Assembly (NCBI GenBank): GCA_047495785.1
Contig: JBLDXI010000038.1
Span: forward strand, 558,001-622,000
Direction of reading: 5' to 3'
DNA: 64,000 nt
Source: Lepidodermella squamata
Lineage: Eukaryota > Animalia > Gastrotricha
Below, piece after piece: positions 30,074 through 46,752 of this stretch. A program made the position numbers and the translations under genes. The notes below the pieces were generated by a model. That model was given only the letters and a program-made list of their open reading frames with translations. It had not been told where the DNA came from and did not search any database. Numbering within the stretch: the first letter of the stretch is position 1; every line of letters begins with the position of its first letter.

Positions 30074-30223
30074 ATGCGCAATGCCCCATTAAGTGTGGCG
30101 GTGCTGCTGTCTATTGTGAAATTTAGTTGGAGAAAAAGCCGAGTTATCTGTGGAATTCTAATAAATGATCGCCGAAAGCTATTCTGAGAAAAAATTAAAA
30201 TTTGATTATTACTTTAGGCAGGC

Positions 30224-32498
30224 ATGACAGAGCCTATATTAACTGAGAATTTTGGGCGGCTACATGACGCTAAGGTTTCGTACGAAGTGAAGCTATATCC
30301 AACTGAGGTCGTCTGCCAGCCCCAACAAGTTCGTAATAAGCAATACACAATAAGCCTACTGTCCGTTATTGGATGCCGTTGCATGAAAGCGAGCGCTGGT
30401 GGAGACAATCGGTCTTTTCTGACGATATATGCTTACCCCAAAAGCAGCTCTGGCGTCCGCCGCCGACAGACTTACACATTTTTCTTCGAAAAAACTACCG
30501 ATTATGAAAAGAATTTTGGTATCATGCGGAAATGGAAACTGACCATCAGCTACTTGGTCGCAAATAGGATTCCTGATATGAGCATTCTTAACTCGTATTT
30601 ATCTGGTGAACTGGAGACTTTGCCAATTCCATCGAGGAGATGGTTGATATTGTTTGTTTTAGACTTTCACTGATATGAACTTACTTAAATGCTAATTTCT
30701 AGGTTGAACCCATTCAGCGGGAAGAAAAACACGGAGAAAATTTTCAGTTCTCTGATTTCTAATATGCTTACGGAGGCCGAAATAGACTACACTGTTGTTA
30801 AAACTGAATATAGTGGACATGCTCGTGATTTCATTCGGCAAGCGCAATTGGATACATTCACGGGAATCATCACGTCCTCAGGCGACGGCCTGTTAAATGA
30901 AGTAATCAACGGCCTGCTCACACGATCTGATTGGTCGGAGGCTATTCAAACACCCCTCGGAGTGCTCCCAACAGGCAGTGGAAACGCACTTGCTGCTCAG
31001 CTTTGCGCAATGGCTGGGTAAGTCAGAAAATCAACTATAAGCTCGTCTAAATGTAAATAAATTAATCGTTTCAGAGAACGCATTGATCGGCAACATGTTC
31101 TCCATGCAGCCTATCTGCTGATCAGGCCGCCGATAAAGGAGCCATCCATTCCACGCCCATTCGACTTGATGGCAGTCGATACGGTTGACGGTCGCATGTA
31201 CTCATTTCTTGCCGTGAGTTGGGGCTTAGTGGCCGATGTAGATATCGAGAGTGAGAAATACCGGTTCATGGGCGGCGCACGATTTGTTGTCGGCGCAGTA
31301 GCTCGAATTCTTAGCCTCCGAACTTATCGTGGGAGAGTTTCGTTCTTACCTGTCGATGCAGCCGAGGCAAAGCAAACTTTACAAGCGCGTCGATCGCGTA
31401 GCATGTCTTCTCCTCCGAAGCGGACCTCTGTTTCCGGCATTCCGCAGTCTGTTATTTCCGACGATGGGCAGCGACACACTTTGACTGGAAACGATGCTAT
31501 CGATTATCCTTCTGTTGGTAGATACAGGTCGCTCGATGACTTGACGGCCAGGGTTGCGACGCAGGGTTCCACACCTTCGTTAGTGACATCGACTCCTGTT
31601 TCGACGACGAAAAACCCTCTGCCTGGCGCATCTGGATCGCGCCATTCGCTGAACTTGACTGCAAATAGCACATTTGCGGCAGCAGGCTCGTCGTCGAACG
31701 ATTATCAGGACGCACTGAACACTTCGGGCACAGCAAGCTCTGCCCTGGACAACTCAGCAACCTCGTCGCGCCATCAGCAGTCTTTTATCGATACACCGCT
31801 TTTGCCGCCGAAGTTGACCGACCCGGTGCCGCTGAATTGGATGACCATTGAAGACGCCTACGTCGGTGTCGTTGCATCTAAGTATGTTTTATTTTTATTT
31901 ATTTTTATTTCAAATTAATCCGGTAAATTCACTGGAAGTTGGTCCTGCATTTTGGCGTAGTATTTTTTAGCTTTTGAGTTCTTTTCACTTGGGTTTCTTT
32001 ACTTGCTGAAACAAGCAATTCAACGCAAACACACTCTCTTTTGTATTAGTCTTGCTTTTTTGTTAAAGCAACAGTAGTAACAAGGAAAAACATTTCAACT
32101 GGCTGACCTAGCATGTTTGCATTTGAACTTCAATGCTTGTAAAAACAATGGAAGGTGAATTTTAGATTTTTTTGCTTTTTTTCAGATGTAGCCATTTGTC
32201 GTATGACACCGTGGCTTGTCCGGCAATCAAGCCTGACGATGGCGCGATCTGGTTGATGCTGACACGAGCGCCCATCTCAAGACAAACGCTGATTCGGCAG
32301 TTCCTGGCCATGGGCAAAGGCGAGGACGTCACCACAGACCCGTCGTTCTGCATGGAGTGTTACAGAGTTCAGGCTTTTCGTATCGAGCCTGTGCCGCCAT
32401 CACCCCCGACACGTATAATGACTGTCGATGGCGAACGGGTTTCATACGGCCCTATTCAATGCCAAATTCTACCTGCGATCGCTTCACTTCTGTGCTGA
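30224..32498 (+). CDS. SPHK: Sphingosine kinase (DAGK catalytic family) with a Ser/Thr-rich insert
   Basis: LNPFSG, TEYSGHA, SGDGLLNEVING, LPTGSGNALA, SFLAVSWGLVADVDIESEKYRFMGGARF, MTVDGE. Confidence 0.95.
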
Positions 32499-35320: not shown

Positions 35321-38300
35321 ATGGACTCGACCATAAGCGGTCAGCAGGATGGAAATGAGAGAGTCGATAACTCATCCGGTCAAGAAATGACCTCCGATCG
35401 CCATACCAATAGCGTGCCGATGTTCGAAGACAAAAGTAATCTTGAACGCCACTCAAGTTTGCGACGGGTTTCTACAATGCCGAGGAGGTAATAATTGTTC
35501 ATTTTTCCATAATTTTTGCTTGTGATAACTTATTCTGCACGGTGCGACAATGAAGCTGTCGGCCAGCCAGGTCGACGGTTTTCCGCTGAGTTTTTTGGTC
35601 TAAATATAGATCAATAGTTGCGAGAGCATGCACACAGGAAATTGCTGATTAAGCTCGGAAGTTTCGATCTTCGATTTCTCAATATTTTCATACAAACTGT
35701 GATTTTATTCTGCATATGGTACAAGCTTTATCACCATCCTGTTTACGAAGCCCATTTCATCACCGTAGAACATTATTGTAATACGGGGCATAAATTTACG
35801 ACTGCCGTACGCGCTTTCAGCTAAAAATAAAAGATTTGCATAGGTATAGCTTGCAAAAACTATCAATACGTAGGTATGTTCAAAGTTCCATTCTTTACTC
35901 TTCCGAAAATCAGGAACCGATCAGCGCCCAGACAGTGCGCTCGTTTCTCGTGACATAGCTATGCTAAGAAAAAGCGCGAGAAACTTGCAGATACACCAGC
36001 CCTTTCGCTGCATTCACCGCTTTTCTTGGGATATGTTTATTTTTCCGCCCGGCAAAAAGTATAACCGAGATATAACGATCAGCCGGTATTTTCTTAAATT
36101 GTTCCTTGTTCCAATTTTATCCAAAACGATATCTCTTAAGTTTTGTATTGGCGTGAAAAAGTCATGCTTGGTTTAGGCTAATAGGTGGCTGTAACATCGA
36201 TTTTTAAGAAATAATAATGTCCACATCTTCAAGCGACGTGAAGTTCATGCCTTAGGTAACCGGGCAGCCCTCTTTTCCCAAGTTACTGTCCGCCAGGAAA
36301 CATTATTGGCATAATGACGTTGAGTAGTATATAGAATTGTTTAGATAAACAAGGCGCTGATTATGATAAATGGCGCACAGTCAGCGCCGAACATCTAAAA
36401 AGCTGTTTGCTGGCCTGCAATAGGAGCGCGTAAAAGAATGTTGGAACTGGGAAGTGTCTGCGCTTTACCTCGCGAATAGTAAGCTCATTATCATTAGCTT
36501 TTTAGATCAGACGGCTATAAAGCGCAACAAGCTGGCGAACTTGGGCGGGCAGGCGGCCATACAGCAAGCGCCTATCATCACGTGGTGCCGCTGCTGCGCT
36601 CGCATTGCACCCGAATGGGCGCTGCCGCTAGTCACGCGAACGCAAAAGCGCTGTGTGATCGATACGCAGCGATCACCGATGATAATGATCGTAAAATATT
36701 GTTCGCGCTGATTTTACGACGCAGGCCTTCGGGACGGTGTAACTTGCGCCGCAGCCGCCGCCGCTTTCCGCTGGCCTAGTATATGAGCTTCCTCCTTTCC
36801 GCCTTTCCCATTTAGCGCGATCACTCGTGTGATTGACTCGTGTTTTGTTGATGCAGTCAGTCGATGCCCTCACCTGTTTGTCGTCTTTTAGTCACAAATA
36901 ATAAGCCCCTGGTTTTGTTGTTCCTTTTGCCTTTTTATTCTATGAAGACAATCCATCCGCGGGGACTCTAGGGTATAGAGGCTTAAAGCAGAACATCACG
37001 ACCGAAAGCAGAGCGCCGTCATCGGCCGGCTTGCTTTTCGCTGCTGCTCCTTTGATTCGCAGCGTACACTGGCGACCAGCGATCGGCTCGCGGCTCGCTA
37101 TCGAATCGCAGGTCACCAATAAGAGCATTATCCATCGCTTGACTGCATTACGCACAACAATCGGCGGAATGACTCGCGAGACCGCGATTCCGCGTGCTCC
37201 CTAGTGGCGCGGCAAATCTCGTCATGCCATTTACAAATATTACTCGCCCGCGCCCACCAGCCAACCCGCGTTTTTGGCCGAGAGATGTCCACTTCAAGCG
37301 AATTCACTTTTTCGCAACTTTCTATAGCTAAAAGCGACAAAATTGCTCACACTTAATTTTTTGTCACTCAGCCAAATTCTTCCTTTTGTTTTATTTGACA
37401 GGGTGACTTACGATGTTACCGAAAAGTGGTACTTTGTAGGAGGCGCAAGTGACCCGGGCCAACTGATACCGCCCGATATGGCCCAGGCTGATGACGAACT
37501 GCAGCGAACAGCAGTGCCGACATCGCTCCGGCGGGAAGAATCGACCAAACCAATCGTCGTTACCCCGGTGATGATTGACGAGGTCGGCAAAACAACGAAA
37601 AGCCGGCCGGATACTCGTGTGCCGTCGCCAGTTGCCTCAGACGTTGGGCTGTTCGCTGAAAAATCGTTCATTTGGATCGGTCGCGAAAATTACGTGCGAA
37701 GAGCGGCGATCCAACTGATTACTTGGAGATAAGTTTCCATCAATATTTTACTTAAAAAAGCTTTATTGAAGTCGTTTCATTTTTTTACTTGGTTTGAGCG
37801 GCTGTCAATATTCGTCATCTTAGTCAACTGTGTTACCCTGGGTGCCGTTGACCCTTGTGAGGGCGACACCTGTGTGACTTTACGCTGCTCGATTTTGCAG
37901 TTGCTCGACCACGTGATTTTTGCGTTCTTTGCGGTCGAAATGCTCATAAAATTGCTGGCGATGGGCGTCACAGGCAAAGGTGCTTACCTAGGCGAATCGT
38001 GGAACCGGCTTGACTTTTTCATCGTCATTGCGGGGTTTGTTTCTTTTTTAATTTTCTTTAAACTTGTCAAAGCAGCATTAATCCTTAAGAGTCCATTCGC
38101 ATTCTAAACTTTTTCCTTTACTATTCTTCTTCTAACTACTCTTCAAACTTTTATGGTTAAGAGGATAAATTTCTTGATTTAATTGTTTGTGAAAATGTTC
38201 TCATTGCTTAATTTTCAAGAGAACAGCTCAAAAGCAACTAAATTTGATAATTTTGCTGATATATAGAGCTGCTGAGTACGTCTTCGTGATGGAAAACATC

Positions 38301-41300
38301 AACCTGTCAGCGATTCGGACGATCCGCGTGCTGCGGCCACTGCGCGCCATTAACCGCATTCCCAGTTTGCGATTGCTCGTCATGCTGTTGCTCGATACAC
38401 TGCCTATGCTTGGCAACGTTCTGCTCATATGCTTTTTCGTTTTTTTCGTGTTCGGCATTGCTGGAGTGCAGTTATGGTCCGGAGTCTTGCGCCAACGTTG
38501 TTTCTTCCCACCGATCACGGATTCTTCTGCAATGATCTTAGCTGCCTCGCAACCGAACACCGCCTCGGTCGATAGCCAGCAAGGTGACACGAGCACTATT
38601 TCGCTGGTTCAACCAAAGCCTAACAATTCTCCTTCGCCTCTGTACTATCCTTCATTCATGCCGAAATACTACCGACCGCCACAGCGCGACTACGTCTGCT
38701 CTCCTTCGTCCGGTATTCTGCACTGCTCGGAAATCCCCAAATACGAGTCAGTTTCTTTTGAAAAATTCGCTATTGCCTTCCTTTTAGATTACTCTTTCCT
38801 AATTTCACACGATTGCTAATTTCTTTTTCAGGATTCTGAAAAGGTAAAATTAGGTGTGAACGGAATCATGATGAAGCACTGTGTGACTCTGTTGTGAATA
38901 ATGTACGATTGGGGTGGACCATTCGAAAAGTACGAAGATTAGGATCCAATCATTTTTATACTAATTAATATTGAAGCTTTTCCCTATTATTTAACCGTAA
39001 AGCCCGTTGTCTTCTCATATGACTGATAAAGATCAGCTCAAACTAATGCATGCATGCCACAAAAGCCGTAACCGTTGATTGCCTGTCGCTCTTCATGCCT
39101 GTAGGTTCAAGCCATGTATTCCGGGTCATCTGGGCAAATAAAAGAACCTTCTGGGAACTAAGACGATTATTACTGGTTGCAATATCAACTGGGGTAATCC
39201 GAAATTTGATAGCTTTTCTCTAGATGTGGCTCGTGGCTTTCCCCCATATGAATTGGATCAGCATTTACGGTTTTTCGTTCAATCGAAAAACGTAGTTTGT
39301 CGAGAAAAAGTTGAAAACATTCCTATTGAAATTACAGGCAGTACGATAGCATGTGCGTCGATTTATTCGGAAACGACACAGCCGAAACTGCCGAGTGCAA
39401 GTGGTGGTCGGACAATTACACCGAGTGTTTGCCCCTCGGACCGAACCCAGCCCGCGGCACCATCAGCTTCGACAACATCGGCCTAGCATGGGTTGCCATT
39501 TTTCAAGTTATCTCACTCGAAGGCTGGACGGAAGTTATGTATCTCATTCAGGTTTGTGTCTTGTCTCATCAATGCGAAGTGTTGAAGTTGGAAAATTCTC
39601 GTTTCAGGACGCGTATTCGTTTTGGGTTTGGCTGTATTTTGTCACTTTGATCATCATCGGTGCCTTTTTCGCCGTTAACTTGTGCCTCGTCGTTATAGCG
39701 ACGCAATTTTCCGAGACGAAAAGACGAGAACTTGCCAAAATGAAGCAAGAGCGCCGCGCTGCCACCTCGTCCCTATCAACGCTTCCTGAATCTGGCTCAG
39801 TGGCGCGCGTCAGTGTTGCCTCGGGTAGTCAAAGCAACATCTACACGCAGATCCTCGACGTCATTGGTCACGGCGCGCGGAAAGCTTATCGCTGGTATCG
39901 GCGGCGCCAAACTCGCGCTCGGCTGGCTCGCATGGCTGCAAATGGCCAAGTGGAAGGGGACCAACTAGTTGGCAATCTCAACAACAGTACGTCTTCAGCT
40001 CCGATGGCCTTCGCCAATGGTTATTTTTACGATCGGCCAGAACTATGCGCGACGTGCCGGCTAAATCAGCAGAACATGCAAAAAGCGCAAAAAGTCGAAA
40101 AAACGCGCAGCTCGGTCGAAGATGAAGTGTCATCAGAAGCGTGGGTGACTCCAGCAACATCGCCCACTCCCAGCCCTGCTGTCGCTCGTCGAACTCTCCT
40201 TCCCGAAACAGTCGACAAAGAGCCAAGTTCGGTGAGCAGTAACGATGGGTTTTGTTCAGCGGCGGGTAGCGAGGCCGCTCTTGACCGCATACCACCGGCT
40301 AGTGCCGTCGAACAAGGGGCAGAGCAAATCAAGCAGCCCAGTGTATGTCCTGTGTGCCAGCAGCTAAGCCACCCGCAATCTAACCGTTCGGTAGCGTTGA
40401 ATATCAGCCTGAATCAATCGGCGCCGAAACGGCTTCCGCCTGGCTTGATTAAGGTCCGAGAGCGGCTGCTAACATTATTAAATATGGCTCGAAGCTGGAT
40501 GAGGGTTGTTGTTGAGCACCCATCCACCACCTGGGCCATCATGGGCGCCATTTGCATCAACGCCTTGTCGATGGGCGCCGAGCACCACAACCAGCCGGAA
40601 ACATTGACTGCAGTCATAGAAGCGCTTAACCTCGTTTTTACAGCGTTTTTTGTCATTGAAATGCTCGCAAAGGTCTTTGTGTACGGCTTTGTGGGTTATA
40701 TTCGAGATAGTTTCAACTTGCTCGATTTTGTTATCGTAAGTCAGTTATAAATTTGACATAATTCAATATTTCGGTATTTGTCTCGCAGGTGATAATATCG
40801 GTTGTGGAACTGGCTCAAGGCAGTGCTTCAGGCCTGTCGGTTTTGAGGACTTTTCGCCTTGTTCGCATCGTCAAACTTATCCGCTTTCTGCCGGCGCTGC
40901 AGCGCCAACTCTATGTTATGCTGAAGACAATCGACAACGTCGCGACATTTTTTCTGTTGCTCAGTTTGTTCCTGTTCATTTTCTCCGTTCTTGGCATGTC
41001 TCTATTCGGCTGCCGGTTCTGCCCAGCCAACCGTGCGCGCATCGCCATGGAACAACAACAAGCTGCTTATGACGCGGCTGGCAACTGGTCGGTCGACGGA
41101 ATGCCGCCGTTGCGTGACGTCAACGGGACAGCGGCGCCCACGATGGCGCAGTATCAGCGTTGGTTGGAGCAGCAAACCGCGCTGGCCTACCACACCTGCC
41201 CTCGAGCCAACTTTGATTCGCTGCTGTGGTCTCTTCTTACTGTCTTCCAAGTACTCACGCAAGAAGCATGGGCTCAGGTAATAAAGTTTTATAGGTATGT

Positions 41301-44300
41301 TCGATAAAGACTAAAACTTATCAAAACGAACAGGTTTTGAAAGACGGGATGCATTTCACGTCCGAATGGGCTGCGTTGTATTTTGTTGCACTTGTTACGT
41401 TCGGCAATTACGTGCTTTTCAACTTGCTCGTTGCCATTCTCGTCGAAGGATTTAGCACAGACGAAGTAAGACCAATTAAATTACTTGCCTTCAATCACAT
41501 CTTCTCTATATTCGTAAATTAGAAAGATGAATCACCCGGCACTCCGAGAAGCTCGTCGGTGCCAGCAGAGGCGCAAACCCCAGGTGTAGCACGCTCCGCG
41601 TCCCAAAATCCTCCAACAGATTTACCAACCGCATCTTCACCTCCAGCAATTACCGTCGAAGACGTCGACGATCCAAATGGGGAACGGATATCTATTTTAC
41701 CTGGTAACGGTGGAGTAAGTGTTCCGAAAGAAGAGCCCGCGCCTCCTAGATGGACTTTGCGCAATTTATTCCGTTGCGGCATGACACGTCGTCAAAGCTG
41801 TTTCTCATCACTTCGCACTCGGCTGATGAACCACAATTTTTTCATCGAGCGCCGTGATTATTCTCTTTTCATGATGGCGCCGAACAACGGCCTCCGGCGG
41901 CGTTTGCTGTGGTTAGTGACCCGCACGCGATTCGACCATGTTGTCCTGGTTCTGATCATCGCCAACTGCGTCGCGATCGCCATGGAGCGCCCGAACATCG
42001 AACCTGGATCGTTCGAGCGTCGAGCTTTAAACATTGCCAATTACGTATTCAACGCGCTATTCGGAATTGAAGCTGTGCTCAAAATAGCAGCCCATGGTTT
42101 TGTCATTGGCGAACACACTTACTTGAAGAATAGCTGGAACGTGCTCGACTTCATTCTCATATCGCTGTCGACTCTGGACATGCTGCTCGAGGCGACTGAT
42201 GCCAAGACAGCGTCGACGAAAATTCTTGAAATTTTCCGCGTAATGCGGTTATTGCGAGCTTTGAGGCCGTTGCGAGTCATCAACCGAGCGCCTGGCCTGA
42301 AAATTGTCGTGCAAACGCTGGTTCTCTCAGTGAAACCTATAGGAAACATCGTTCTAATCTGCTTAGCTTTCTTCCTCATCTTTGGTATTCTCGGGGTACA
42401 GCTGTTTCGAGGCTGCTTCTACAAATGCGTCGCAAACGGGCGAACTGCACCAGTTAATACTAATTCTAGCATTCTCAGCTCAAACATGTCTTTCCAAGCG
42501 CCATTTGGCCAAGCTGACGCGACATCAACCTCAACGCCGCCAATCAACGTGGGAGTTCCTGGCTCCGGTGTCGGTTCGGCGGCTGCTCTGGTTGCAGAAG
42601 CGCTCATGTCTGTGAAAACTAAGAACGATTGCCTTGCTCTCGGCTTCGAGTGGGAAAATGAGAATTATAATTTCGATAACCTCGGAAACGGGCTGATGAC
42701 GTTGTTCGTGTTTTCAACGTTCGATGGCTGGGTCAAAATTACTCGTGATGGTCTAGATTGTGTTGGCGTCGATAAACAACCCATCCATGATTACAACCCA
42801 TGGCGCCTAGTCTATTTTATTTCCTTCCTTCTTATCGTTGGCTTTTTCGTGAGTTCTTATTCATACTGCGAATATTTTTTGGAGTTTTAGTTTTTTTATA
42901 GGTGCTCAACATGTTCGTGGGTGTTGTAGTTAACAACTTTCAGAAGGTGCGCAAGCAAATTGAGGCAGAGATAGAAGCAAAGAAGCGCGAGATCAAAGCG
43001 AGAAAGCTACTCGAGCGGCTCCAAAACAAGTCGGAAACGAAGAAAAGAGGTACGTATAAAGCGTTCGAACGCTGCTATTTTTTAAATTTCCCCAAGGTCA
43101 CCCATTAATTTGCCAACAATCAAATGCTTCCGTCGAAGAAGAAGCTCATTGTCTTTGTGTGAAGCTGAAAAAACAGTGCAATTTTTTATTATGAATTGCA
43201 AGCCAACCGCAGCTTCAATTTGCTACCGGTATTTAATTTTTTCGTGTTCATTTGGGTAGCGTCGAGACTCTTCAGTTTATCCACCTTCAAAAGGGTCAAG
43301 CGACCATCGCTCAAGAGTAAAAATTGTATTACGAACTTGAATTTACGTTCATTGAGCTCACCTAATATTTTGACTCTTTCCTTCTTAATACGAAGCTACG
43401 GATTTTTTATTACTTTCATTGCCTGAATAATTTATTTTTAATCTGGGTCAAATGAAAATTGCGCCTCACTTGATTTTTCCATCTAGGATTATAACTTCTA
43501 TTTCCTGAATAATTTCCTTTGGAGCAGCACTGAAAAAAACTTGACCATCACATGGAGATTAATGCTCTCATTACCAATGTTTCCCCTGCACCAATATTTG
43601 CGATTTGTTCGGGCAATTTTATCCCTCATATTAAATGATCCGTTCTACGACATTTTTTATTTAATACTATTATTATTTGTGGTCCTCAGTCTACCGCCGG
43701 CGTCTTCGAAGGATGATGATGTGTTATAGGAGGACGGCGGGTAGTCTAGATGGCGACAAGCCGCCGCCAGCCAACGGTAACGCCAGTTGTAGCAGTCATG
43801 AAACTGATGAGTTTTCATCGGGCGGCGCCTCGCCAGCACCAAGCTTACTAAACCACACCGTTCGCAGCTTGCACCGCCTCGATAGCTGCGCAAGCTCACG
43901 CCAACACGTGCGCGTTACACTGCCGGTCAACCGCGTCGACAGTGAGCCCATCCGCATGCGCCTCGACTCAGCCTGCTCCGCGTCGTCGTCGCGCTGCTCC
44001 GTCATCCTCAACAATCACCCCGAACACCACTCACAGGTGACGAGCAGCGTTGCGACGCCGTCCGAGAGTGGGGTTGCGGTTGATGCGCATGCGACTGGCG
44101 ATGCGGCGCCCCCGTCATCGCCTCGAGGCGGTGGGTTGCCGAGGGGCAAAGGTGCAGTGCCGAGTCGCTTCACACAGCGCAGAAAAGCCACTGTATTCAG
44201 TAGGTCACATTGCGAGCACGCGTTTTCACGTATGATGATGTATCACCTCGGAACTTTTCGGGACTTGTTCGCAACATGATTAAGTTTGCTTCACATGAGT

Positions 44301-46752
44301 ATTTAACATCGGTTTCCAATTTCCAGCAGGGTATGATTAAGTTAGTAAATTTCCTCGCCATTTTGTCGCGAAAAGTTCCAGAGGTTTTGCTTACCCCGCT
44401 TTTAATATGCTTCGAGGACTATGCAGCCGCGTTCTGTCAATGTCGCCGAATGATTCTTTGAACCCGCTTAAATAAATTGATGTGCTTTGGTATATGACTA
44501 AAAGGCTCGACAATCTTGTCACGCTTTGCCATTCTTTATTTTTCACTCTGAATTTGTCACGTCCGCCAGGTCGCCTTCAATCCATGCACCTCATGATGGG
44601 TGTAGTTTATGAATTCGGTTTGTAGCAACATCTATATGTATCAACCACCCTTTGTGGAGTTTTGGGAATTGAAAAATTACCTATAACAAGGCGTTTGATG
44701 GTGTGAATTAGATTCAACAAACCGTAGTAGTTCAATGTAATAAAAATAACCGAGTTGCTTCTTGGCAACTCAGTTCCCCTACTCCATCCTGCATGTGTTA
44801 CGACTGTTCTAGAGGGCATGCACTGCCGACAAAGACATTTCCGGCTTTTCATCACTGCCTTGCTTTTTGCTTGATGTCCTTGTTGTTACTGCTGTGTATT
44901 CTTCTGTTTTTTCCAATCAATGAGAACAATTAATTGAACGTTGAACGTTTTCGTCTAGTTATGGGGACGAACGACGATGCGTATTACTGGCGAGCGTATC
45001 CAGCTTGGCGCAGGTGCTTCCATCGCTTCTGCACCCACAAGTATTTCGACTTGGCGGTGGCTGGCATCATTGGCATTAATGTTTTGGTTATGGCGACCGA
45101 ATTCCACCTAATGCCGAAAAAGTTCCTTCTTGCAGTCAAAATTTTAAACTACATCTTTACCGGTGTGTTCATCTTCGAAGCGGTCACTAAACTTATTGCA
45201 TTTGGACCTCGGCGGTATTTTCGCGAGCGGTGGAACCAGCTCGACATAGCCATCGTCGTGCTGTCGCTTGTCGGCATTTTCCTCGAAGATCTCGACAACA
45301 AATTCATTCCGATCAACCCGACAATTGTACGCGTAGCTCGCGTCTTCCGCATCGCGCGTGTTTTCAAGCTGCTTAAAATGGCCAAAGGCATTCGCGAACT
45401 GCTTGATACCGTGTCAGAGGCTCTGCCCCAGGTTATAGCTGAATTCATATTAAATTGTTGTGATAATAATTTTACTCAAATTCATATTTTAGGTCGGAAA
45501 CCTGTCGCTGCTGTTTATGCTACTGTTTTTCATCTACGCCTCGTTAGGCGTCGAGCTGTTCGGCAAGTTCGATTGCACATACAAAATCTGCGAGGGTTTG
45601 TCAAGGCACGCCAACTTTCATAACTTCGGCATCGCTCTGTTAACACTCTTTCGCATTTCAACCGGCGATAACTGGAACGGAATTCTCAAAGACACGCTGC
45701 GCCTGATTCACGATCCCGAATCGCACTGCGCCACAGAGCCTGGCGGCTGCTTCCTAGTTCAAATTCTGTCGCCGTTTTACTTTGTATCTTTCGTCCTCGT
45801 CGCGCAATTTGTGCTCATCAACGTCGTAGTTGCCGTTTTGATGCGCCAGTTGGAAGACTCGCACACGAAAACAGAAATCGACCCGGAGAAGATCGAGGCC
45901 GAACTCGAGGGTAAGGTCGAGCAGATTGAGGCCCTCGTCCAGGAAACATGCCCAGAATTAGTCGAACGGCTACAGCATCAAATCGGCGCTGATCGGGATG
46001 ACGCGATTTCCCTAGTTTCAACCGAATACATCTTGCGCGAGCGTGCGAGTTTCGACGCCGGCCAGATCGGTGTGCTGGCAGGCAAGGATTCGTTGTTTCG
46101 ACCTCGCCGAATAGTCGACCGCAGCCAGTCGGCCTCCACGAGTTTCCGCCACAAAACTCGGCCTCGTCTGCTGACGACCGTCGGTGAAAACGTCGGCATC
46201 TTCGCAGCAGCGATCGAAGCTGCGCAGCAAAAGCGCAGAGATGCCGAAATGTCCCCAGAAGGCGACATGAGCGCTGACGAGGAGAGAAGAAGTATCGTCG
46301 ACTCGGCGGTGCTCGAGCAGGTGTTCAAAGATCTGGGCGAGCAGTTGCATGAGGCTGACGAACGCAGATCGCCTGAGCGCTCAGCTCTATCTGATCTCAC
46401 TCGAAACGCCCTGAGGCTAGCATCAGCTTCTGGTATTGACCCGGAAGAGGCCGCGCGTCTCGTCGAAGCCTTAACCACCGGTCTTGGCGATGAACTGCGA
46501 TCTGCCGTTGACGTATTCATTGAACTGCGGCGCGAGGAGTTGCTCAACCCCGCCAAGTCACGGGTAAAAAATGCGGCGGCGCGCGCCAAAGTCAAAGTTG
46601 CCAACGGCCGCTCGAACGAACCATCGCATCCGCTTCAGAGTCAGTCGGGACAGAATATGTCAGCGACCACGAGCGATGTAGAAAGCCCGGCTGTTGGAGC
46701 GGATGATCCAGAACTTGCGGCTCTCTTACGTCTACGCACGAGTACGGTGTGA
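35321..46752 (+). CDS. Cav3: T-type voltage-gated calcium channel alpha1 (Cav3)
   Basis: Four 6-TM repeats with S4 segments, an EEDD filter (SLEGW, TQEAW, TFDGW, TGDNW) and a gating-brake-like QFSETKRRE... helix. The first exon 35321-35488 splices in frame (AG|G) to the exon starting at about 37402. Confidence 0.96.

Follow-up and report, generated by a model that had tools for sequence, protein, structure and literature searches.

A predicted Cav3 (T-type) channel gene of the gastrotrich Lepidodermella squamata with alanine in place of the domain II beacon aspartate

The stretch of DNA analyzed here, referred to below as the window, comprises 64,000 nucleotides of the gastrotrich Lepidodermella squamata (assembly GCA_047495785.1, contig JBLDXI010000038.1, positions 558,001 to 622,000). 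It contains a gene that, judged from its sequence and its place in a tree, encodes a working voltage-gated channel, a member of the Cav3 (T-type) family. In the pore loop of domain II, alanine replaces the aspartate that follows the selectivity-filter glutamate of Cav1, Cav2 and Cav3 channels. This aspartate, at position +1 from the filter residue, has been called the "beacon" and, in one proposal, acts as the principal switch that sets whether one- and four-domain channels prefer Ca2+ or Na+ (PMC10120453). The substitution is real and constitutive. By analogy with published mutants, it would probably yield a low-threshold channel in which inward current at physiological Ca2+ is carried largely by Na+ and block by Ca2+ is weakened.

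The domain II filter and its missing aspartate

The codons reported in the original prediction (ACG CAA GAA GCA TGG) do lie on the forward strand at 41257-41271, within the interval 41251-41277 given there, and translate to TQEAW. Next come GCT CAG and a GT donor at 41278, and the reading frame resumes past a 56-nt intron. The features concerned are as follows.

40789..41277, forward strand: exon 6, encoding domain II S4, S5, the S5-P loop, the pore helix and the filter to ...TQEAWAQ; both flanking introns are in phase 0
40736-40788 (53 nt) and 41278-41333 (56 nt), forward strand: the introns flanking exon 6; the intron-less open reading frame (ORF) of an orthologue, P0001, reads through both junctions
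41263..41265, forward strand: domain II filter Glu932 (GAA)
41266..41268, forward strand: Ala933 (GCA), domain II +1 (beacon) position, Asp in Cav1/2/3 and Ser (AGT) in the orthologue

Since the alignment to the solved human Cav3.2 and Cav3.3 channels is ungapped around the filter, Ala933 occupies the exact position of the aspartate. The gene thus lacks a residue found in nearly every Cav3 channel. An anthozoan Cav3 that carries asparagine there is still named Cav3 (PMC9694082), so the aspartate is near-universal in the family but not strictly defining. At the other +1 positions the residues are Gly (domain I), Gly (domain III) and Asn (domain IV), while domain II +3 and +4 are Ala and Gln. 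A compensating acidic residue, sought at the +1 positions of domains I, III and IV and at domain II +3/+4, was found at none of them. The filter would thereby hold four carboxylates (E-E-D-D) rather than the usual five (E-E(D)-D-D). It also shows the three pore features of the beacon-less class Ib, namely an EEDD ring, a neutral residue other than glycine at domain II +1, and no aspartate at any other +1.

Could the alanine be a sequencing or assembly error, or belong to a pseudogenized paralogue? The read check proposed with the original prediction was carried out on assembled reads. An independently assembled 25.7-kb Logan contig from run X1, with a word depth of 99, shows no differences from the window over 39300-45200 (5.9 kb), although X1 is possibly the assembly's own sample and so not fully independent. 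Fragments of roughly 90-160 nt from run X2, a second study, likewise show no differences, and their coverage of position 41267 could not be confirmed. No run on record is RNA, which leaves artefact some room. Against it, GCA is two substitutions away from either aspartate codon (GAY), the orthologue assembled from two other samples also lacks the aspartate, the frame of 2,048 codons is intact over 11 exons, and synonymous sites are saturated between the two species while the pore is 91% identical. Error or gene decay is hardly credible in light of these findings, and Ala933 is taken as real.

The original prediction also described the change as constitutive, and the exon structure bears this out. 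Domain II from S4 through the filter is encoded in the single exon 40789-41277 between introns of only 53 and 56 nt, and a six-frame pattern search of the window found no second pore-like exon besides that of domain I. With no alternative of the exon-12 type in the window, alanine should be present in every transcript of the gene. Rescue by RNA editing was also considered and rejected, as A-to-I conversion cannot turn GCA into an aspartate codon.

Gene model and Cav3 identity

The original prediction assigned the gene to Cav3 from its letters, and each line of evidence examined agrees. Splice sites were placed by hand, guided by the reading frames, by GT and AG at the intron ends and by the orthologue, which has fewer interruptions.

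37478..46752, forward strand: complete Cav3 (T-type) channel gene, hand-joined model of 11 exons, 2,048 codons plus stop
37478-37728, 37789-38034, 38267-38746, 39338-39551, 39608-40735 and 40789-41277, forward strand: exons 1-6
41334-41465, 41523-42848, 42902-43049, 44959-45431 and 45493-46752, forward strand: exons 7-11
37729..37788, forward strand: AT-AC intron of 60 nt in the N-terminal region, beginning ATAAGT (donor) and ending TTTTAC
39519..39521, forward strand: domain I filter Glu387 (ISLEGW)
39839..39910, forward strand: gating-brake-like segment in the proximal I-II linker (residues 475-498), in a region that aligns to residues 429-531 of Branchiostoma Cav3; sequence resemblance only
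42720..42725, forward strand: domain III Phe1380-Asp1381 (STFDGW), with the filter Asp kept and the Cav3-typical preceding Lys changed to Phe
45667..45669, forward strand: domain IV filter Asp1688 (STGDNW)

The joined exons form one open frame with no internal stops, and the introns comprise nine of the GT-AG type and one AT-AC. Excision of the latter, at 37729-37788, is the sole way to obtain the ...QLITW|SWFERLS... junction seen in other Cav3 channels. Pfam detected the Ion_trans domain in seven open frames of exon size, spread over 37.7-46.7 kb, with all four repeats represented. The repeats are collinear with those of the Lymnaea and Branchiostoma T-type channels, and an orthologous gene on a metagenome contig (L001) is collinear from the N-terminus to the stop codon. 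Each of the four S4 segments carries an Arg/Lys ladder. The pore loops ISLEGW, TQEAW, STFDGW and STGDNW give the selectivity ring E-E-D-D, and the ring of the L001 orthologue is the same. A pattern search of the 2,048-residue model found no motif of the alpha-interaction domain (AID) that binds the beta subunit. Against solved structures in the PDB, the pore exon matched human Cav3.2, Cav3.3 and Cav3.1 best (E about 1e-44), ahead of Cav1/2 (about 1e-25) and Nav channels (about 1e-20). Together with the EEDD filter, the brake-like motif and the nesting among protostome Cav3 channels described below, these results uphold the Cav3 assignment.

Rarity of the substitution among Cav channels

According to Guan et al. 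(2022), domain II +1 is aspartate in all eukaryotic Cav1, Cav2 and Cav3 channels except one of the two anthozoan Cav3 genes, which has asparagine (PMC9694082). Spafford (2023) likewise regards the anthozoans as holding the only known animal Cav gene without the beacon (PMC10120453). A survey of pore loops was carried out here through an exhaustive search of 1.84 billion representative proteins, which returned 2,546 matches. TQEDW occurred in 51 of the best 150 of these 2,546 representatives, which were inspected, and in 97 of the 381 proteins retrieved overall. Among the 381, a residue other than aspartate at domain II +1 was confined to the orthologue (TQESW), two sister groups of paralogues (TQDSW and TQDAW) and the anthozoan Porites (TQENW, in the Porites evermanni fragment P0233). 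The near-invariance of the aspartate claimed in the original prediction therefore stands, both in these two papers and in this survey. The nearest metagenome fragments with a canonical loop (P0031, P0049 and P0186) derive from samples of other studies. A literature search found no report of a beacon-less Cav variant in any bilaterian, nor of gastrotrich Cav channels, and the paper describing the L. squamata genome does not discuss ion channels (PMC11660948).

One further protein from the survey, P0079 (1,341 residues), is Cav3-like and falls outside the clade of the window gene on a long basal branch. It carries TQDDW (a filter of the EDDD type) and a short loop with one cysteine, and may be another departure from the rule that Cav3 filters are always EEDD.

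An orthologue with serine, and the age of the loss

The best match to the window protein is P0001 (77% identity), with the loop TQESW. This protein derives from two metagenome contigs, L001 and L002, which are 99.7% identical to each other and hold the whole orthologous gene, including the STFDGW loop of domain III and a two-cysteine domain IV loop as in the window. A gene with a DAGK_cat domain (sphingosine/diacylglycerol-kinase-like) lies upstream of the channel in both genomes (window 30218-32495; L001:4332-4994), while the downstream neighbors differ.

Over their whole length the two channels share 65% of their amino acids. The figure rises to 75-84% for the repeats and to 91% for the domain II pore loop with S6, where non-synonymous divergence (dN) is 0.085. 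The Nei-Gojobori method (NG86) gave no synonymous rate (dS), as synonymous differences exceeded its limit, and four-fold degenerate sites were used instead. In codons that specify the same residue, 74% of these sites differ, which amounts to saturation. Because synonymous sites are saturated and the pore is nevertheless 91% identical, the pore is under strong purifying selection and the aspartate has been absent for a long time in both lineages. The substitution, Ala here and Ser in the orthologue, is thus an old one on this comparison. The alanine (GCA) and serine (AGT) codons differ at all three positions; either the +1 site drifted among small neutral residues after a single loss, or the aspartate was lost twice. 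A third orthologue was not found in a set of 5.8 billion proteins searched with P0001 and the domain III ORF, where the next best matches were 48-58% identical and either canonical or paralogous. The metagenome contigs of the Joint Genome Institute (JGI), searched with the pore exon, gave one weak and unrelated match (L009, 31% identity). The age of the loss consequently rests on two species.

A tree was built from 98 domain II segments and rooted on loops of the Cav1/2 type. The window gene, P0001 and the fragments with TQDSW, TQDAW and TQDDW formed a clade with a support of 100 in the Shimodaira-Hasegawa-like approximate likelihood-ratio test (SH-aLRT). This clade fell within a wider group (support 87) of protostome Cav3 channels from Lymnaea, Gordionus, Adineta, Cichlidogyrus, Trichinella, Litomosoides, Romanomermis, Centruroides and Rhipicephalus. 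Since the TQDSW, TQDAW and TQDDW fragments were recovered from the two metagenome samples that also yielded L001 and L002, they are paralogues in the genome of the relative, whose samples contain EDDD-type paralogues both with and without the +1 aspartate. No branch in the clade is shorter than that of the window gene, which, like its TQESW orthologue, has kept the filter glutamate, where the paralogue fragments have TQD. Of this lineage-specific Cav3 radiation it seems to be the member that has changed least. The tree of 98 segments is compatible with an ancestor of the clade either with or without the aspartate.

Intron positions differ between the two genes. Introns 2, 5, 6 and 10 of the window (at 38035, 40736, 41278 and 45432) are missing from L001, whereas L001 has an in-frame intron of 51 nt in domain IV (L001:14336-14386) that the window lacks. 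These differences indicate intron turnover in the lineage.

What the channel would conduct

In an ordinary Cav channel, the +1 aspartate and the neighboring glutamate are thought to hold a Ca2+ ion at the mouth of the pore, where it would repel Na+ and be displaced only by another Ca2+. With Ala933, the Glu-Asp pair thought to hold this blocking ion would be gone, and the ring would come to resemble the glutamate ring of bacterial Na+ channels, where the residue at +1 is small and neutral. Functional data bear directly on this idea. With asparagine in place of the aspartate, the Na+-dependent gain in peak current rose from 1.32-fold to 6.53-fold in human Cav3.2 (D975N) and from 2.32-fold to 8.56-fold in the snail LCav3-12b (D1098N) (PMC9694082). 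The same work concluded that in the Na+-permeable exon-12a forms of snail and nematode Cav3 a lysine of the outer loop neutralizes the +1 aspartate, and interpreted the asparagine-bearing anthozoan Cav3 as Na+-permeable (PMC9694082). More generally, a small neutral residue other than glycine at +1, combined with a filter glutamate, has been proposed to confer Na+ permeability, as in NavAb and NaChBac (PMC10120453). These mutants support the link between the aspartate and Ca2+ preference drawn in the original prediction, and with it the suggestion made there of a Na+-permeable or low-selectivity T-type channel. Because the published mutants pass more Na+ and the natural variant is read as Na+-permeable, a preference for Na+ is the expected, and probable, outcome for the window gene as well.

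The outer loops of the channel complicate this expectation.

41005..41217, forward strand: domain II S5-P loop with three cysteines, CxxC...C (FGCRFCPAN ... HTCPRANFD), and an insert of about 50 residues between the second and third
45724..45750, forward strand: domain IV P-S6 loop with two cysteines (HCATEPGGC) and one possible disulfide; HCRDEADGC in the orthologue

The CxxC...C arrangement of the domain II loop is diagnostic of exon 12a, which marks the Na+-permeable isoform in other protostomes (PMC7382465). In the window gene it does not form a short (38-46 residues), alternatively spliced exon. From the end of S5 (LFG) to the domain II filter there are 85 residues, compared with 35-40 in most three-cysteine Cav3 channels. 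Throughout the clade (P0001, P0018, P0068, P0111 and P0202) these loops carry poorly conserved inserts (41032-41187 in the window) and measure 70-114 residues to the filter, while the outer cysteines stay fixed. Because the outer loop shows the three-cysteine pattern of exon 12a, it is conceivable that the lineage first fixed a Na+-permeable form of the 12a type, in which the already neutralized aspartate would have become dispensable and was then replaced.

Several observations weigh against a predominantly Na+-carrying pore. Two cysteine pairs in the domain IV P-S6 loop, the other mark of class Ib channels, have been held obligatory for Na+-permeable Cav3 channels of invertebrates (PMC10120453), and both the window gene and its orthologue have a single pair. 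The insert of about 50 residues in domain II could reach the mouth of the pore. At domain II +7/+8 the clade has acquired Lys-Asp (VLKDGM instead of VLYNGM), and in domain III the lysine before the filter aspartate has become phenylalanine (SSKDGW to STFDGW) in the orthologue too; the effect of either change on selectivity is unpredictable. The +1 site may simply be relaxed, or the aspartate may have been lost twice. Finally, with no run recorded as RNA, the X2 fragments are not assignable to RNA or DNA.

Taken to their conclusion, such features would make the channel an ordinary Ca2+-preferring T-type channel, in which the long domain II loop, Asp940 (+8), the single-disulfide loop of domain IV and Phe1380 offset the missing aspartate. 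One cysteine pair in domain IV is what the Ca2+-preferring vertebrate and cnidarian forms have (PMC7382465), loop exchanges on their own strongly shift the Na+/Ca2+ preference of snail and human Cav3 (PMC10120453), and the surroundings of the filter have indeed changed in this clade. On the other hand, a lone Asp-to-Asn change sufficed for a gain of Na+ permeation in each of two widely different channels; human Cav3.2 responded to D975N even though it, too, has a single domain IV cysteine pair (PMC9694082). No domain has an acidic residue at +1, nor does domain II at +3/+4, from which the aspartate could be replaced. Asp940 would stand two helical turns above the filter, and outer charges have been rated far less influential than +1 (PMC10120453). 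A Ca2+-preferring channel of this kind is unlikely, although the loops give it some weight.

It is also conceivable that the main effect of the substitution lies elsewhere, such as in block by Ni2+ or Zn2+, in Ca2+/Ba2+ preference, in conductance or in the response to drugs, and that the gene is one specialized product of a large Cav3 radiation, not dedicated to carrying Na+. In relatives of the animal the domain II filter varies among several Cav3 paralogues (TQDDW, TQDSW, TQDAW and TQDDGW), and changes in the domain II and IV loops of snail Cav3 affect divalent permeation and block as well (PMC10120453). The domain III change points the same way. Lysine before the filter aspartate is near-universal in other Cav3 channels (SSKDGW), and Phe1380 (42720-42722) is instead as in Cav1 channels. 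In human Cav3.3 the equivalent lysine, K1379, projects into the central cavity beneath the filter, where it is in contact with drugs (mibefradil and otilonium), and Cav1.1 has phenylalanine at this position (PMC9019099). Sensitivity to T-type drugs may accordingly differ in the window channel. The same structural placement led to the rejection of another idea, that the Lys-to-Phe change balances the charge lost in domain II. An effect of this sort would be compatible with one on Na+, however, and in mutagenesis neutralization of the aspartate was followed by a large Na+ effect in every case (PMC9694082). As a full account, a purely non-Na+ role is very improbable, and increased Na+ permeation is still the favored outcome.

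A bolder proposal is that this Cav3 gene serves as the animal's working voltage-gated Na+ channel, as an independent, gene-level invention, within Bilateria, of a four-domain Na+-carrying channel on a T-type scaffold, amid a wholesale reshuffling of selectivity among cation channels. This is improbable on present grounds.

Comparison with known systems

The closest natural parallel is the beacon-less Cav3 of anthozoans (Porites TQENW, class Ib). Like the window gene, it combines an EEDD ring with a neutral domain II +1 residue that is fixed in the gene rather than made by splicing, and in both cases the organism has other Cav3 paralogues, in our case to judge from the samples of the relative. 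The two differ in that the anthozoan residue is asparagine, whereas it is alanine or serine here; in that the cnidarian domain II loop is short and lacks the three-cysteine pattern, whereas that of the window gene is three-cysteine and very long; and in that the cnidarian Na+-type gene has two domain IV cysteine pairs (PMC9694082) against one in the window gene. As the window gene is of the protostome type and not cnidarian, its origin is independent of the anthozoan case. It is a second natural beacon-less Cav3, and a bilaterian one.

The exon-12a isoforms of Lymnaea (LCav3-12a) and nematodes (cca-1 12a) share the CxxC...C loop with the window gene (PMC7382465) and share the target, since it is the +1 aspartate that is neutralized to give a Na+-dominated T-type current. 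These channels nonetheless keep the aspartate, neutralize it with a loop lysine and switch by means of mutually exclusive exons, whereas the window gene has lost the aspartate itself and has no second exon to switch to. The exon 12b partner of other protostomes is a five-cysteine form, and the window gene has no separate exon 12. Its loop is also about 50 residues longer than the reported 12a exons (38-46 residues).

The only direct functional data at this position come from human Cav3.2 D975N and Lymnaea LCav3-12b D1098N (PMC9694082), which resemble the window gene in having a neutral residue there. They are laboratory asparagine mutants, whereas the window gene has a natural alanine together with many lineage-specific changes. 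The bacterial channels NavAb and NaChBac (class Ia), with a filter glutamate, a small neutral residue and a tryptophan, have been placed in the same no-beacon category (PMC10120453). They are homotetramers with four identical loops, whereas in the window gene only domain II has this arrangement and domains III and IV contribute aspartates. The bacterial filter reads TLESW, close to the TQESW of the orthologue.

A second natural loss would provide an independent test of the beacon rule, in a bilaterian, with Ala or Ser rather than Asn and in a different loop context. If the channel proves Na+-permeable, the double disulfide of domain IV would not be obligatory; if it proves Ca2+-selective, the beacon rule would need revision. 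The gene also suggests an evolutionary path from splice-controlled neutralization, as in exon 12a, to permanent loss of the aspartate, and it adds to signs of a rebuilt set of excitability channels in a little-studied group of animals.

Intron 9 and fragment joints

Intron 9 lies in the linker between domains III and IV.

43050..44958, forward strand: intron 9, 1,909 nt; once it is removed, the III-IV linker has the usual length for Cav3

Within it, 43665-44276 forms an open frame of 204 residues rich in Ser, Pro and Ala, with a guanine-plus-cytosine content of 0.58-0.70 in an intron that is otherwise AT-rich. Splice signals in phase with it occur at 43690 (acceptor) and at 43941, 44199 and 44229 (donors). 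In the orthologue, an ORF of 183 residues (L001:12798-13349) occupies the same place and is likewise Ser-rich, with no detectable similarity in sequence. The open frame could represent either a cassette exon or a gene nested in the intron. Fragments of run X2 match 43634-44027 within the intron and not its remainder. Joints between X2 contigs are nearly all opposite-strand fold-backs, as would arise from amplification or assembly palindromes, and none of them skips an intron.

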